In this document: piece by piece, positions 17,238-46,300 of the stretch
Position numbering within the stretch: position 1 is the first letter of the stretch
How the letters are laid out: the number at the start of each line of letters is the position of its first letter
Assembly (NCBI RefSeq): GCF_002571385.2
Contig: NW_019218201.1
Span: 204,832-266,827, forward strand
Length of the DNA: 61,996 bases
Reading direction: 5' to 3'
From: Stylophora pistillata
Taxonomy: Eukaryota
Made by a program: the position numbers and the translations under genes
Notes under the pieces: model-generated
What the model was told of the DNA's origin: nothing
Databases searched by the model: none
What the model saw: the letters and a program-made list of their open reading frames with translations, nothing else

Positions 17238-17603
17238 ATAATGGTAATTGAACTGAGTGGAGTGCAATTTGGGCTGAAATCATACGCGTGATTTTAAAAT
17301 CACAAGTATGATTTATGACCAAAATTGCATGACACGACGTTCAATTACCACTTTATTACATCCATTTTGAAATCGCCAATCACAGGGAATACTTTAAACA
17401 AGCATTGAAATCGCCCAAATACAGGAAATACTTTAAACAAGCCTTGAAATTTGATTGGTTGTTTGTTTTAAGTGTAACTTCCTCATTGGCTGGAAAAAAG
17501 ATGCGATTTAGAGCAAAAAATGGTGCGATTCGTGACTAAATCGCACCAATTAGAGCCAATCAGATTACAGGGACCACCAGTGATTTCAAAATGGATGTAA
17601 TAA
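17238..17603. mobile_element. Double-hairpin non-autonomous element (Crypton-like), family D
   Basis: TATAT start; IR-A ggtaattgaac / gttcaattacc; 5-nt spacer; perfect 22-bp IR-B ttattacatccattttgaaatc / gatttcaaaatggatgtaataa. Confidence 0.7.
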
Positions 17604-18172
17604 ATACCATAATCATTTCTAGGCTGGAAGAACGTTTTGGATAAACCCAAGGACACCTGGAACTATCACGCGAGTGGAACTCCTTATGACAACTTGAGTA
17701 TCATGCACTCTACTCAAACTGCTTTTGCCAAAAGAGGGCCAAATGGCAGACTCCTGACAACCATTGAAATCAGGGATAAAAATGTAAGTTCTTTTTAAAA
17801 TATAGAGAGTGGCTTTTTGCTTTAAATAAAGTTATTAATTTTTTTGGAAGAAATAATGGGAATGGAATAGCTAAACGCACAGGACCCGTCAATACTCGAG
17901 GCTATCAAATTGGTGCTGAAAATGAAAACGATAACCTTAGCTGGCAAAAAAAAAAAAAAAATGAAAACGATAACCTTAGATTTTTACTGAGGTGAACTGT
18001 GAGATTTCACATGAATTTCCTAATTTTCCTAATTATGAATTATTAATTATTAATTATGTAATTATGAATTATTAATTATGAATTTCCTAATTTTCCACGG
18101 CTTCAGTAACCCACTTACAGGGGTCACCCACACAAATTGAAAAAAATTTACCTCAACTCGAGGTATCTCTTT

Positions 18173-43300: not shown

Positions 43301-46300
43301 CCTCTGATTCGTTATTTGAAAAGCATAGGCACAAACCGCCAATGAAAAATGGAGTTAGAAGTAGACTAGTGCCCAGGAAAGCACAGGCTACTGTTAGAAC
43401 GCCTTGTTGTTTGAATAACGCAATCGACAAGTTGTTTGATGAAAGCGTGGAAATGCTAGAGTGTTTTTGAAGGTAAATAGTCTAAAATATTCTAGAAATC
43501 TTGATACTCGACAGAAATACCCATTTTGATTGAAATTTCAAATAAAAATTTCCGTATTGTGCGGGTTTGACTGAATTGTGCGGTTCCGCACCCACGCACC
43601 CTGTCAGAAGGCCTGTATATCTTATTAACCAAGCATGAGGGCCGTACTGGGAGAATATCCGCCTGAGGTCTTGACAGTACGGACCGAGCGTACAAAAAAG
43701 ACCGAGGACCAATATTCTTCCAGTACGGTCCTGAGTAAGCTTGGTTGATAAGAGATTTATTATACAACTCAAGTTCAAAGAGACACAAGTGCAGTATCAT
43801 TCGGGACCATTCGGGACAGTGCCCGGTCCAATACTTAGAGAATATTGGACCGGCAATAGTGCATTTTGAGTGGTTGATTTTAGTTATTGGCCCTCTGACT
43901 GCCTGAGTCGTGTAATAAATCAAGATATGCAACATGTAACTTCAATTGCCCTATTTGGGCTATTGTGGTTGTAAAAGTATAAATTAAAGTTAATCACTGT
44001 TAGTATTATGTACAGTCAGAGTGCTTCTTTGACTTTTCACAGGCTGTCAGCCAGAAATTATCCTAAATATTGCTTGATTACTTAACTAACCATGTTTCTT
44101 TGGAAGATCTACTGTAAACTTGTGAAGAACCTCTCTGGTATTGCCGCAGAGTGTACCAAACAGCGCACCATTACCGTCCATCACAATAAAACCAAACTTG
44201 TTATCATCTGCAAGAAGGGCATTCAGGGCCTGCATAAACACAACAAACACAACATGTTAACCATTGCAGGTTAAACTTGCACAACCTATACATGTAATAC
44301 ACCACTGTACAATCTTGTCAAGTCAGGCCTGTTTTGTAAATTGACCATTCAGAGAGAAAAAAATACTTCAAAAATTTTAACTTCTACTTTAAACTCAACA
44401 AAATAATGAATGAATATTTACTGAAGAGGGGAAGTCTGAAGAATTTCAAACCTTCAATTTAATTTCAAGGAGTAAAAGAAAGCTACACTGAAACACTGCT
44501 TCACATATCTACATGATTACAATTTTTATCATGCAACACAGACATGAAGAGATAGAGAGTATTAAGTATAATTATCTGTAGTCTGGCAGTAAGCAGAATT
44601 GTTCACTTTACATCACACCTGCCTGCTAACCAGACTAGTTAAGCCTTTGTTCTTCTTCCAAAGAGAATCAAACAAGCAATTTTGACTCTGCTTGTAGACA
44701 CTTTCATTCAAGGGTTTGGAAGGTTTAACATTACCTTTTAACAATACATTCTACTCTATTTTATTAATCCTCTGGTCCTAGAAACAGCAAGTCACACTTC
44801 AGCCAGAACCTTGAGGTACTGACTCCTCATGACCACCTTTGTAATTACATGTGAACAGTTTACATCATTTGATTGGTTAACTAACCTCTGTATGAAACTT
44901 GTTGTCGCAGAGATACAATGATGTATTGATTGGCTTGAAGGGCTCAAAGTCTATGTTGACCTTCTTCTCTTTGCCATCTTCAGTAACAATTGTTCCACAA
45001 TAGACCACAAGACCATTTGTAGGGACTGAAATAATGAAAGTTTAGAATATGTGGATTGTAATGCTATATCTAGGGGGTACATATCATATTAAATGGTTTC
45101 TTTCATTATATCTGAAATTCCTCTGAGGTGCAACTAGCAACAGATTTCTTACTGTGTCAGTGAGTCATACCAAATAAGGGAAAGCTTGGGTGTAATGTCA
45201 CTAGAACATAAGACAAGTGGAATTATCCAAAACAGCTGTTGAAAGTCACATCCATTGACAAACTCTGGAGGAGGGGAAATGACAAACTTCTCCTTTCAAG
45301 AAGGAGAGATGAAGAAAAAGAGTCCTGTGAAAAGAGAGGAAAGAAGGAACAGAGTATGAAGGGCAAGTAGGAGGAGGACAACGTCAAAAATAATGAACAG
45401 ACAAAAAACTGTGGAAGGAGAAGGGTGAGCAGAAAAGACAAAGAGGTACCTGGGAAGAAATTGGAGATGAAATAATTATGGAAGGGGGCAAGGGAGGAAA
45501 GAGGAAAGCCTGGGTCTTCTTAAAGATTTGAAGTAAGTTGGCATAATGTTAAAGCAGATGTTAGGAGTTGTGCATGGGGGCAATTAGACTTTTCAGAGTT
45601 TAGTAAAAGCAAAGTTAAACAGACAAGTGTAACAAGTTTTAAAACATACCTTTTGAATACAGCTTCAGTCTTTGTTGTACAGATGTGATTGCACTAAGGA
45701 CTGACAATCTGAGAAAGGTAATTCAATGAAAAAAAAACAGTAAAATAACTAGGAGAAAATTTTAATCTGCAAATCTGACATCATCATACAACTCAAACAT
45801 GGTAATGTGAACCCACCTGTTCACTCTACTCTTGATATTTGATGCTGTTCCAAACTCGTCAGCCAACATCTTGGCTATACGAGAGATTTGATCTTTTGGA
45901 GGGATGATCAAAGAGATCATGCTTGTTCCATTCCTGATAATCAAAATACAACATGAGCAAAAAATACAGCAATGTACCAATGTCAAGCGACACTTGTAAA
46001 TTTAGAGTGGATCCACAGATTAACCAAAAGACACAGGAATGTAATCTGACAGTAAGCAAGGTTAATTGTTCACTACAGTCACACCTGCCTGCTAACTAGA
46101 TAAAGACTTCCTTTTCTTCCATGAATTATCCAATGAGCAGTACGTTGATTGCTATCGGATTCTTTTGACATTTCTATGGAAATTTAGTTGATGCAATAGT
46201 TGTGTTCAAAATGGTTTTGAGTACACTGGAAAATTAAGTACATTATCAGGGCTCAATACTAACTTTTCAACTTACTAGCCAAGTGGCTAGTGACATCTTA

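Follow-up and report, generated by a model that had tools for sequence, protein, structure and literature searches.

No class of eukaryotic DNA transposons is less well understood than the Cryptons, whose boundaries are hard to define. The substrates of bacterial tyrosine recombinases include the integron attC sites and the attP(+) of CTX phage, which are both folded single-stranded DNA. Animal Cryptons have been reported without terminal repeats, either direct or inverted, Cryptons are described as lacking terminal inverted repeats (TIRs) (PMC3212892, PMC13465315), and the Glomhopper paper makes no mention of hairpins (PMC13465315). In a 62-kb stretch of DNA from the coral Stylophora pistillata (the window) we analysed five loci that are very probably (at roughly 0.8) non-autonomous members of four high-copy Crypton families, mobilised by a Cre-like recombinase of the DUF3504 / KIAA1958-like (CryptonA-like) type.

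The coral elements resemble the CryptonA / DUF3504 Cryptons in several respects: their long copies carry a single tyrosine recombinase ORF with DUF3504, reverse transcriptase and target site duplication (TSD) are absent, the element end TTATT and the target NTATT provide a short direct repeat or microhomology, and non-autonomous derivatives far outnumber coding copies. In contrast to CryptonA, the coral elements have asymmetric terminal inverted repeats (ATIRs) of 11-23 nt, found in all families, a subterminal hairpin of 115-150 nt whose conserved design is strand-specific, a well-defined target that is palindromic, and tandem arrays with exact junctions. The presence of TIRs departs from the published Crypton description, but leaves the class-defining enzyme untouched.

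Read in the direction of the recombinase gene, an element consists of 5'-TTATTA plus ATIR, a body, ATIR' plus TAATAA, a spacer of five nucleotides (N5), the hairpin and a 6-7-nt tail-3'. The body has about 160 nt, or the recombinase ORF plus about 330 nt in long copies, and the hairpin is imperfect, its base reading (C)TTATTA...TAATAA(G). The original prediction had described the five elements as TATAT, a long hairpin A, a 5-nt spacer and an inverted-repeat pair B, and direct reading confirmed this layout (Table 1), although the recombinase gene runs opposite to the direction in which it was first read. The junction AATAA (AATTA in family 1)-5 nt-TTATTA was read directly in all four families, and pair B corresponds to the ATIRs, starting with TTATTA and finishing with TAATAA as had been proposed. 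The TATAT is the element's own 3' tail in families 2 and 4, but is partly flank in families 1 and 3; the ATATA that follows the family 3 tail is probably target sequence. The families had also been called sequence-unrelated, with structure and not sequence as the conserved feature. There are indeed four families with a folded hairpin design in common, but they also share short motifs, TTATTA/TAATAA, besides the design of the hairpin apex. As for the junction between A and B, which had been likened to a recombinase site, each element in fact holds three AATAA-N5-7-TTATT sites, of which this is one, but the crossover lies at the element ends and not at the internal junction.

Table 1. Elements and partial hairpin in the window, with all coordinates on the window + strand.
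Feature	Coordinates	Strand	Parts and remarks
Family 1 non-autonomous element	17238..17603	-	tail 17238-17243; hairpin A ~17244-17349; spacer CCACT 17348-17352; ATIR' 17353-17374; body with ~38-nt direct repeats; 5' ATIR 17582-17603, TAATAA end
Partial hairpin, family related to family 2	~18436..18522	-	begins TCTTATTAACTGAGCGG; direct reading
Family 2 non-autonomous element	19172..19476	-	tail ATATAT 19172-19177, right after assembly gap; hairpin A 19178-19321; spacer AGAT 19322-19325; ATIR' from 19326; 5' ATIR finishing in TAATAA 19471-19476
Family 3 non-autonomous element	30220..30531	+	5' ATIR from 30220 (TTATTAAAAAC); ATIR' with terminal TAATAA 30403-30408; hairpin A 30409-30524; tail AA 30525-30526
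Family 4 non-autonomous element	41276..41842	-	target half-site AATAT 41271-41275; tail ATATAT 41276-41281; hairpin A 41282-41421; spacer TTAA 41422-41425; ATIR' from 41426; recombinase N-terminus remnant 41547-41687 (minus strand); 5' ATIR's TAATAA end 41837-41842
Family 2 non-autonomous element, older copy	43616..43918	-	9.4% from family consensus; tail TATAT 43616-43620; hairpin A 43621-43752; spacer AGAT 43753-43756; ATIR' from 43757; 5' ATIR with TAATAA end 43913-43918

The elements at 19172-19476 and 43616-43918 are 92-94% identical and represent a single family, which brings the total to four families. The apices of the hairpins vary among the window copies, being inverted relative to the family 2 consensus in the first of these two elements (around 19242-19252), partly deleted in the second, and degenerate in the family 1 copy. 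The right flank of the family 4 element reads ATTTAG, then TTATT. The partial hairpin is truncated by an assembly gap (18523-19171), the same one that adjoins the element starting at 19172, and a second gap (21394-21411) overlaps no element. When the window was scanned for TAATAA followed, at a distance of at most 7 nt, by a hairpin of at least 12 bp, six matches were obtained: five are the five elements, all of one polarity, and the sixth is the B stem of one of them, the element at 19172-19476.

Across the genome, each of the four families, whose ends are fixed, has about 1,000 to 2,700 or more first-look candidates; families 1 and 3 were assessed from match coordinates plus a few retrieved sequences. 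In families 2, 3 and 4, each of the best 30-40 copies per family covers the full-length A+B unit and keeps the spacer at a constant length, in line with the proposal that A and B travel together, and family 1 is modular, yet A and B are retained. Family 2 is young, its copies lying within 0-2% of their own consensus.

The Crypton reading is settled by long relatives that carry a recombinase between the same kind of ends. Such long copies, encoding a YR/DUF3504 protein, were found at three loci, which belong to families 4 and 1 and to a fifth family, and they support the earlier view of the window copies as non-autonomous members of a system mobilised by a tyrosine recombinase (YR), the long copies carrying neither a DDE nor a Helitron protein. 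In the first locus (C902, L072), termini of family 4, with identities of 82% (5') and 89.5% (3'), enclose a single ORF of 450 aa in an element of ~2.06 kb end to end. The ORF matches DUF3504 (E 5e-18), QRICH1 and the C-terminus of Phage_integrase, contains the motifs GWRVRDEH, HSARRT and GHKNLKSIDSY, and is named KIAA1958-like by NCBI, KIAA1958 being one of the Crypton-derived genes. Thirty homologues retain residues R199, K235, H328, R331 and Y363, and the predicted model of the protein matches Cre (E 1e-8, TM 0.7), as well as lambda Int, XerH, Tn1549 Int and Flp. The second locus (C51, L073) has the termini of family 1, with 97% identity over the 5' 174 nt and 75% identity of the 3' end to the window copy, and encloses a homologous recombinase gene with one frameshift. 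The third (C1098, L075) represents the fifth family, with the same layout in ~1.9 kb. Both share the catalytic motifs with L072, and the three recombinases are DUF3504 / KIAA1958-like proteins of 435-450 aa with a mutual identity of only 33-36%. In L072 and L075 the recombinase is the only ORF in the gene orientation, and there is no reverse transcriptase and no other transposase, an absence by which Cryptons differ from DIRS, Ngaro and MarCry. The same layout is present in three other coral assemblies, where the recombinase gene is likewise placed and oriented.

The catalytic R, K, HxxR, H/W and Y are present in the long relatives and not in the five window copies. The remnant in the family 4 element has 53% identity over 47 aa to the L072 recombinase (tblastn), and the 68-aa ORF of the family 4 body extends into DUF3504 in relatives such as P0135; an HMMER library search with this 68-aa peptide returned short ORFs only, the longer of which gave the link to the recombinase. 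For family 1, 5' ends are located 340-600 nt upstream of DUF3504 matches at five loci. Families 4 and 1 share termini with a coding copy, at the identities given above. In this assembly none of the four families yielded a recombinase-coding copy whose termini reach 95% identity to its own, and for families 2 and 3, the youngest family included, no recombinase-coding partner was identified in this genome.

The target has the form AATAW-N6^NTATT and is not duplicated, and the first bases of the element, TTATT, repeat the NTATT of the target. In the flanks of 53 copies there is a T at position -9 in 36 (P 4e-8), an A at -8 in 37 (P 7e-9) and a T at -1 in 30, and after the 3' end TAT is found at +2 to +4 in 25-27 of 30 copies, a signal at +1 to +4 that may be partly due to a variable (TA)n tail. 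The flanks of the copies were searched for TSDs and none were present, and the two element ends are not a matched terminal pair, both as had been stated. A nested empty site is revealed by comparing L045 with the uninterrupted window copy and L063, and it is the one real case of a paralogous empty site among the retrieved loci. In head-to-tail arrays the tail is joined exactly to TTATTA, as in the family 3 tandem junction, where TTGTTAA is directly followed by TTATTA. The spacer adjacent to the crossover is that of the target at one junction and that of the element at the other, and is never mixed. At L013, where the family 2 copy does not differ from the consensus, public reads show the insertion in 4/4 samples and no contig skips it; the occupied state of this locus in four samples is uninformative on mobility and was not counted against it. 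Neither circles nor excision footprints nor polymorphic empty alleles were seen, the reads examined being those at this one locus; the exact junctions of the head-to-tail arrays serve as the only proxy for a circular intermediate.

When folded as single-stranded DNA, hairpin A of the window elements has an energy of -32 to -58 kcal/mol, with z values of -9.5 to -14.8 relative to shuffled sequences. In unrelated families, the hairpin strand that lies opposite the gene has a C-GNA-G triloop and two to three tandem CGAG/CGAG (G.A) internal loops, the counts of CGAG:CTCG on this strand being 6:0, 4:0 and 4:0. Families 1-4, L075 and three other corals all show this design on one strand. Once the two ends meet, which is the case in the tandem arrays, ATIR', hairpin and ATIR make up a single long imperfect palindrome, and the joined form folds into one hairpin of -63 to -71 kcal/mol (z -15 to -18). 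The strand-specific design of the hairpin suggests its use as folded single-stranded DNA, like the integron attC.

We propose that the recombinase would excise the element as a circle, in which ATIR', N5, the hairpin, N7 and ATIR would follow one another as this long imperfect palindrome. Its arms would be two putative recombinase-binding duplexes around a short unpaired spacer, and recombination between the joined-end site and the AATAW-N6-NTATT target would take place at the shared (T)TATT or inside it. The site may act as single-stranded DNA in folded form, exchanging one strand only and leaving the resolution to replication, as proposed here by analogy with integron attC or CTX-phage attP; we advance this only tentatively, and what likelihood it has comes from the spacers not being exchanged and from the hairpin being strand-specific. 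The more complete version, in which the recombination site would be a folded ssDNA hairpin completed only when the ends are joined, with the strand chosen by the sheared G.A pairs and the GNA triloop and with one strand exchange into a duplex AATAW-N6-NTATT target, is rather doubtful.

With attC and CTX attP(+) the coral sites have in common that structure is kept while sequence varies, that short conserved motifs lie at the base of an imperfect hairpin, that the irregularities are strand-specific, that a single crossover lies beside a conserved triplet or pentamer and does not require homology of the spacers, and that integrated copies occur in tandem. They differ in that attC has extrahelical bases, whereas the coral hairpins have tandem G.A pairs and GNA loops, and in that the putative coral site is split over two transposon ends and becomes complete only once these are joined. 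The Tn916/Tn1549 conjugative transposons also offer parallels, namely a tyrosine recombinase (Tn1549 Int being among the fold matches), a circular intermediate (a putative one in the coral), an AT-rich target, half-sites around a 6-7-nt spacer and coupling sequences that need not match. However, they are bacterial, lack a long hairpin, and carry along flanking coupling sequences, so that both junction spacers vary, whereas the coral 3' spacer is constant.

Alternatively, the site could work as an ordinary duplex or cruciform core site. The same Cryptons would then use a classical duplex reaction with both strand exchanges, the circle junction being the ordinary core site and hairpin A an accessory, such as a cruciform or bend that aids synapsis, a place where DNA synthesis is primed, or a site for a host factor. 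We regard this as a serious possibility, if short of a probable one: inverted half-sites AATAW / WTATT around 5-7 nt can be read in the ends, in the internal junction and in the target, which is the textbook layout of a duplex core site, the shared (T)TATT could serve as the overlap region, and the published Crypton model is one of duplex recombination at a microhomology of 4-6 bp. A duplex reaction hardly explains, however, why the strand-specific G.A/GNA design occurs in at least five families and in four coral assemblies, nor does it agree with a crossover-adjacent spacer that comes from the target or from the element and is never mixed; the tail-to-tail palindromic dimers through hairpin A that were seen also fit fold-back synthesis on a single strand.

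In its layout the coral element is close to the Helitron2 / Helentron HINE and DINE-1 elements (PMC3627910, PMC4067079, PMC11417382), with which it shares short asymmetric TIRs (12-16 nt in the published elements), the right one immediately preceding a 3' stem-loop, a 5' T, T-T insertion, a target rich in AT or T, tandem arrays, short internal repeats and the lack of a TSD. On these grounds, and with RepHel genes present in the genome, a Helitron2-type identity was first favoured, and it was overturned by the recombinase-coding long relatives. That the families are Helitron2/Helentron-type (HLE2) rolling-circle elements moved by RepHel, with the recombinase ORFs as passengers, now appears very unlikely. 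The genome does have 42 Helitron_like_N matches and an intact OTU-DUF6570-Rep-PIF1 ORF, an HLE2 RepHel gene, and at two loci the RepHel element also sits 5' of TTATW. However, the recombinase gene is placed and oriented alike in three families here and at three loci in other corals, and since these recombinases are only 33-80% identical to each other while keeping a fixed position, the pattern is not that of a captured passenger. Furthermore, no RepHel was found between such ends, and the termini of this genome's RepHel elements are different ones: the C174-type element, whose 5' 498 nt are missing from this assembly, ends in ...CTACTAG, and no termini shared with the families were detected at the RepHel loci C174 (L061/L062) and C13 (L064) or in TARA and other coral contigs (L066-L071). 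A guessed ATIR of the C174-type element had no partner above background, and no match was obtained when the family bodies were compared by blastx with 120 RepHel proteins. The coral stem-loop is also 5-10 times longer than that of Helitron2, and the coding partner is a tyrosine recombinase instead of RepHel, so that the likeness is architectural only.

The idea that A and B are two ordinary TIR MITEs, adjacent by chance or nesting and moved by a DDE enzyme with a TA-type duplication hidden in TTATTA/TAATAA, draws on both modules being inverted repeats and on a palindromic TA lengthening the apparent repeat, but it can be set aside with near certainty, as A+B forms one unit with constant ends and a 5-nt spacer in the best 30-40 copies of each of three families, the flanks are without duplication, which ruled out the TA-TSD MITE, and the long copies encode a tyrosine recombinase, not a DDE enzyme. 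Replitrons, reported from plants, algae and protists only, were also considered and dropped.

The ends of the Crypton elements have in common a folded hairpin design rather than sequence, and this gives a picture of the probable recombination sites of this Crypton lineage. With its ATIRs, its subterminal hairpin, an internal spacer of 5 nt, a tail of 6-7 nt and a palindromic target, the coral lineage provides a complete and testable definition of such a site. With thousands of young copies, as in family 2 at 0-2% from consensus, and an intact recombinase of 450 aa, assays of binding, cleavage and transposition can be designed. For genome annotation, it is relevant that coral Crypton derivatives mimic the Helitron2/HINE architecture and that tools relying on short TIRs plus a stem-loop could misclassify them. 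Finally, the hairpin, being strand-specific, opens up the prospect that tyrosine recombinases of eukaryotes can use folded single-stranded DNA, and a folded-hairpin site, if true, would be an animal counterpart of the integron attC x attI reaction or of CTX-phage integration.

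Direct reading of the window bore out the layout described for five places, TATAT followed by a long hairpin (A), a 5-nt spacer and an inverted-repeat pair (B, TTATTA...TAATAA), and every hairpin and B inverted repeat was recovered by repeat search. Elements 2 and 5 (19172-19476 and 43616-43918) are 92-94% identical and thus form one family (family 2), so that the five elements comprise four families, the others being represented by 17238-17603 (family 1), 30220-30531 (family 3) and 41276-41842 (family 4). When all 62 kb of the window were scanned for TAATAA with a hairpin of 12 bp or more no further than 7 nt downstream, six matches emerged, namely the five elements, all of one polarity, and the B stem of element 2. 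The layout is therefore specific rather than something that AT-rich DNA produces by chance. Folded as single-stranded DNA, hairpin A reaches -32 to -58 kcal/mol (z -9.5 to -14.8 versus dinucleotide shuffles). The start of element 2 directly abuts an assembly gap (18523-19171), which hides its outer flank, and an 11-nt tandem repeat (~29 copies, 19732-20050) lies ~250 nt downstream of this element. Other hairpin or inverted-repeat repeats of the window (see table) do not have this layout and probably belong to different MITE families. The stretches 50648-52622 and 53406-57292 share several duplicated collinear blocks (80-93% identity, about 2.76-3.1 kb and 4.67 kb apart), which is a local segmental duplication or repeated gene.

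In the S. pistillata assembly (G000, 398 Mb, with the window at C417:204832-266827), the composite of A and B is in each family a single unit with fixed ends. First-look candidates, which are lower bounds and not copy numbers, exceeded 2,049 for family 2 (40/40 scored copies span 43616-43918/21), 2,744 for family 4 (41271/4-41842), 2,035 for family 3 (30218/20-30530) and 977 for family 1, which is modular, with variable internal parts; families 1 and 3 were judged from match coordinates and a small number of copy sequences. Thirty family 2 copies lie 0-2.2% from the family consensus, indicating recent activity, and the two window copies 7.5-9.4%. About a dozen of these 30 young copies border on an assembly gap on their hairpin/(TA)n side, which is a systematic assembly break. 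Family 3-like (L069 25091-25203, minus) and family 2-like (L070 577-750, plus) copies occur in other coral assemblies (GCA_949826985.1, ERZ25067864-type contigs), so that the families or their architecture predate S. pistillata.

The body of family 4 holds a 68-aa ORF, open in many copies and followed by GTAAAT, whose peptide matched short ORFs only among 1.8 billion representative proteins; the longer of these matches (proteins P0135 and P0124) continue into a DUF3504 domain. A genome search with P0135 returned many family 4 copies, at least 25 more distant DUF3504 loci, and a full-length match in a 486-aa open frame on contig C902 (locus L072), a long relative of family 4. Over 323 nt its 5' end (TCATTATCCAAC..., preceded by the flank AATAT-cagttt) shares 82% identity with the family 4 consensus; its 3' 268 nt share 89.5% identity with family 4 and contain ...GGGTAATAA, ATAAC, the hairpin and an ATATAT... 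tail. The 450-aa ORF between them has Pfam matches to DUF3504 (E 5e-18), QRICH1 and the C-terminal part of Phage_integrase, carries the motifs GWRVRDEH, HSARRT and GHKNLKSIDSY, and has R199, K235, H328, R331 and Y363 invariant or nearly so in 30 homologues; its AlphaFold model (pLDDT 75) matches Cre (E 1e-8, TM 0.7) and also lambda integrase, XerH, Tn1549 integrase and Flp. The protein is 100% identical to NCBI 'KIAA1958-like [Stylophora pistillata]'.

A long family 1 element was found on C51 (L073), where the flank AATAA-tatcat is followed by TTATTACATCC..., and the window copy matches its 5' 174 nt at 97% identity. Its recombinase gene has one frameshift, with GFRGRQEH, NHSMRKT and GHARKSSLDDY kept, and the 3' side reads ATIR' (ATIR and ATIR' being the two arms of the asymmetric terminal inverted repeat B), AGTG, hairpin, CATTAT and the flank TTATAAAC. 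By coordinates, DUF3504 matches on C51, C303, C281, C29 and C973 are preceded, at a distance of 340-600 nt, by 5' ends of family 1. C1098 (L075) represents a fifth family. Its recombinase has 435 aa, its 5' ATIR follows AATAT-N7, and N7 separates ATIR' from a hairpin of 161 nt. The recombinases of C902, C51 and C1098 share only 33-36% identity, so the gene belongs to the elements themselves rather than being a passenger. The S. pistillata assembly yielded no coding copy with 95% or more identity to any of the four families. Three other coral assemblies (L076, L077, L078) give the same picture: recombinases 48-80% identical to the C902 protein, an ATIR' ending TAATAA 320-355 nt after the stop codon, and a TATAT tail at the end. 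In L077 and L078 the 5' ATIR starts TTATTA 154-166 nt before the ATG and a 142-nt hairpin begins three nt past ATIR'; no 5' ATIR was found in L076. Long copies with a DUF3504 recombinase between the same ends thus exist for families 4 and 1, partners of families 2 and 3 not having been found, and the original prediction that the repeats are non-autonomous members of a tyrosine recombinase system is supported: the elements are Crypton-type.

Ends and targets are given in recombinase-gene orientation. The elements begin TTATTA and end, after the hairpin, in G-ATATAT (families 2 and 4), TTGTTAA (family 3) or C-CATTAT (family 1), in each case 7 nt past the AATAA that terminates the hairpin, which in family 1 is AATTA. 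When families 2 and 4 are pooled, their flanks have A at -11 (29/53) and -10 (28/53), T at -9 (36/53, P 4e-8), A at -8 (37/53, P 7e-9), W at -7, T at -1 (30/53) and, on the other side, T at +2 (27/30), A at +3 (27/30), T at +4 (25/30) and T at +5 (17/30), giving the target AATAW-N6^NTATT; a variable (TA)n tail may be the source of part of the + side signal. Flanks differ among copies without duplication, as had been claimed, and an empty-site comparison, of one nested insertion, agrees: a family 4 copy (L045) lies in a family 3-like tail between GTGGAATAA and TTATTAAATAT, a point at which the window family 3 copy and the L063 array are uninterrupted, with no duplication and only (T)TATT repeated. 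At L013, a locus whose family 2 copy is identical to the consensus, aligned reads showed the insertion site occupied in 4/4 sequencing samples, and no empty allele was seen. About 1.6 kb downstream of the recombinase-coding element, a family 3 copy splits a family 4-like copy (L072 4300-4760; G000:C902:66100-66560), another case of mutual insertion into AATAA/TTATT sites.

The ends also occur joined. Family 3 arrays have a 305-307-nt period and identical junctions throughout, the first unit of L063 being followed by a partial hairpin duplication, and family 4 arrays in L055 and L057 have the exact head-to-tail junction ...TAATAG-ATATAT-CTTATTAG (strand opposite the gene); in L043 a family 4 copy abuts the 5' end of a family 3 copy. 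When joined, ATIR', N5, hairpin, N7 and ATIR form one continuous imperfect palindrome, folding at -70.7 kcal/mol (z -17.6) and -63.2 kcal/mol (z -15.2). Each element has three AATAA-N5-7-TTATT sites, one at each of its 5' and 3' junctions and one inside it where A meets B, and the target is a fourth of this form. Family 4 tail-to-tail palindromic dimers share a single hairpin A without the ATATAT tail; they resemble a dimer subfamily that is itself mobile, or the outcome of repeated fold-back synthesis.

Coordinates of arrays, dimers, gaps, other repeats and coding regions
Feature	Location	Strand	Remarks
Family 3 head-to-tail array	G000:C767:111139-112498 (L063)		four units; junction TTGTTAA, then TTATTA
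Further family 3 tandem arrays	C9:808465-809302; C1324:12142-12763; C445:167199-167874		same junction
Family 4 dimers	L033-L036, L039, L046, L049, L051 (e.g. G000:C64:904773-905632; C103:492935-493917)		different flanks, usually broken by assembly gaps
Related partial hairpin	window, about 18436-18522		cut by gap 18523-19171
Assembly gap	window 21394-21411		touches none of the elements
Other hairpin/inverted-repeat repeats	window 19491-19655, 27417-27580, 38451-38614, 51830-52107, 52855-52960		no TAATAA-spacer-hairpin layout
Recombinase ORF, 450 aa	L072 830-2179		C902 element
HLE2-type RepHel ORF, intact, 1,987-1,996 aa	G000:C174:45344-51307 (L061 3845-9808); L066 456-6446	minus (L061)	OTU, DUF6570, Helitron_like_N, PIF1

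The families had been described as sequence-unrelated, which is true of the hairpin stems of families 2, 3 and 4 but not of their apex and internal loops. On the strand opposite the recombinase gene, the one on which the layout was originally read, these hairpins are capped by a C-GNA-G triloop, GCA for family 2 and GTA for the other two families, and have two or three internal loops of CGAG facing CGAG, that is, tandem G.A/A.G mismatches closed by C-G pairs (CGAG:CTCG counts 6:0, 4:0 and 4:0); the gene strand has C.T/T.C mismatches at these positions. The same apex is found in the intact family 1 hairpin (L073), in L075 and in three hairpins from other corals. In one family 2 window copy, the 11-nt apex at 19242-19252 is TCGCTGCGCTC, the reverse complement of the family consensus apex, with the lower G.A pairs of the element (19172-19476) keeping their polarity, a local flip of the hairpin tip only. 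GNA triloops and tandem sheared G.A pairs are unusually stable in DNA, so that the design, judged from sequence, points to one strand functioning as single-stranded DNA.

With anatomy, target, lack of TSD and exact end-to-end joints established, the published Crypton model and bacterial tyrosine recombinases suggest that an element would be excised as a circle, and that its joined-end site would recombine with AATAW-N6-NTATT, at or within the common (T)TATT. At the 5' junction the spacer beside the crossover invariably comes from the target, and at the 3' junction it invariably comes from the element. These unexchanged spacers, the strand-specific hairpin and the fold-back dimers lead us to propose, with a probability of about 0.4, that the substrate is a folded single strand, with one strand exchange resolved by replication, as in integron attC x attI recombination or CTX-phage integration. 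We give the same probability to a duplex or cruciform site of the conventional kind, in which the hairpin would be an accessory, although the same three observations, constant spacer origin, strand specificity and fold-back dimers, count against it.

The layout is also the same as that published for Helitron2-type (HLE2) and non-autonomous (HINE) elements, which start with T, insert into T-rich targets without a TSD, occur in head-to-tail arrays and carry short asymmetric TIRs, the right one immediately before a 3' stem-loop (PMC3627910; PMC4067079; PMC11417382). Since the genome also has Helitron transposase (RepHel) genes, with 42 Helitron_like_N matches and an intact 1,987-aa OTU-DUF6570-Rep-PIF1 ORF on C174, RepHel was sought between such ends; none was found between TTATTA/hairpin-type ends in C174, C13, TARA contigs and L068, and the RepHel elements have no sequence in common with the four families; this reading was rejected. 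The C13 RepHel family is old (65-83% identity) and lacks a hairpin of this kind. TARA coral-metagenome contigs L066 and L067 match the C174 element at 99% identity, and the 3' end of that element, ...CTACTAG, shared by its relative L068, adjoins TTATAAG at one locus and TTATTATTT at another; the end reads ...CTTATTAATCTTTGATTACTACTAG, beside TTATW at two different loci. The assembly lacks the 5' 498 nt of the C174 element, which fall behind a small gap. Downstream of the RepHel ORF are a second ORF, of 328 aa, and tandem repeats of about 370 nt, and the protein cluster has 212 members. A 76-nt G/C-rich hairpin-like repeat, cccagggcctttt...aaaagaccctggg (L061 9806-9881; G000:C174:51305-51380), lies directly beside a scaffold gap and has at least 35 genomic copies of 80-99% identity.

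By enzyme, the coral elements are grouped with the DUF3504-encoding CryptonA-like Cryptons. A survey of Cryptons reported no terminal repeats in those of animals (PMC3212892), and Cryptons have been described as lacking TIRs, with hairpins unmentioned (PMC13465315), whereas the coral elements have both ATIRs and a hairpin. The four families may already be catalogued in Repbase or Dfam under some class; what appears to be new is their common architecture, their target and the strand-specific hairpin.
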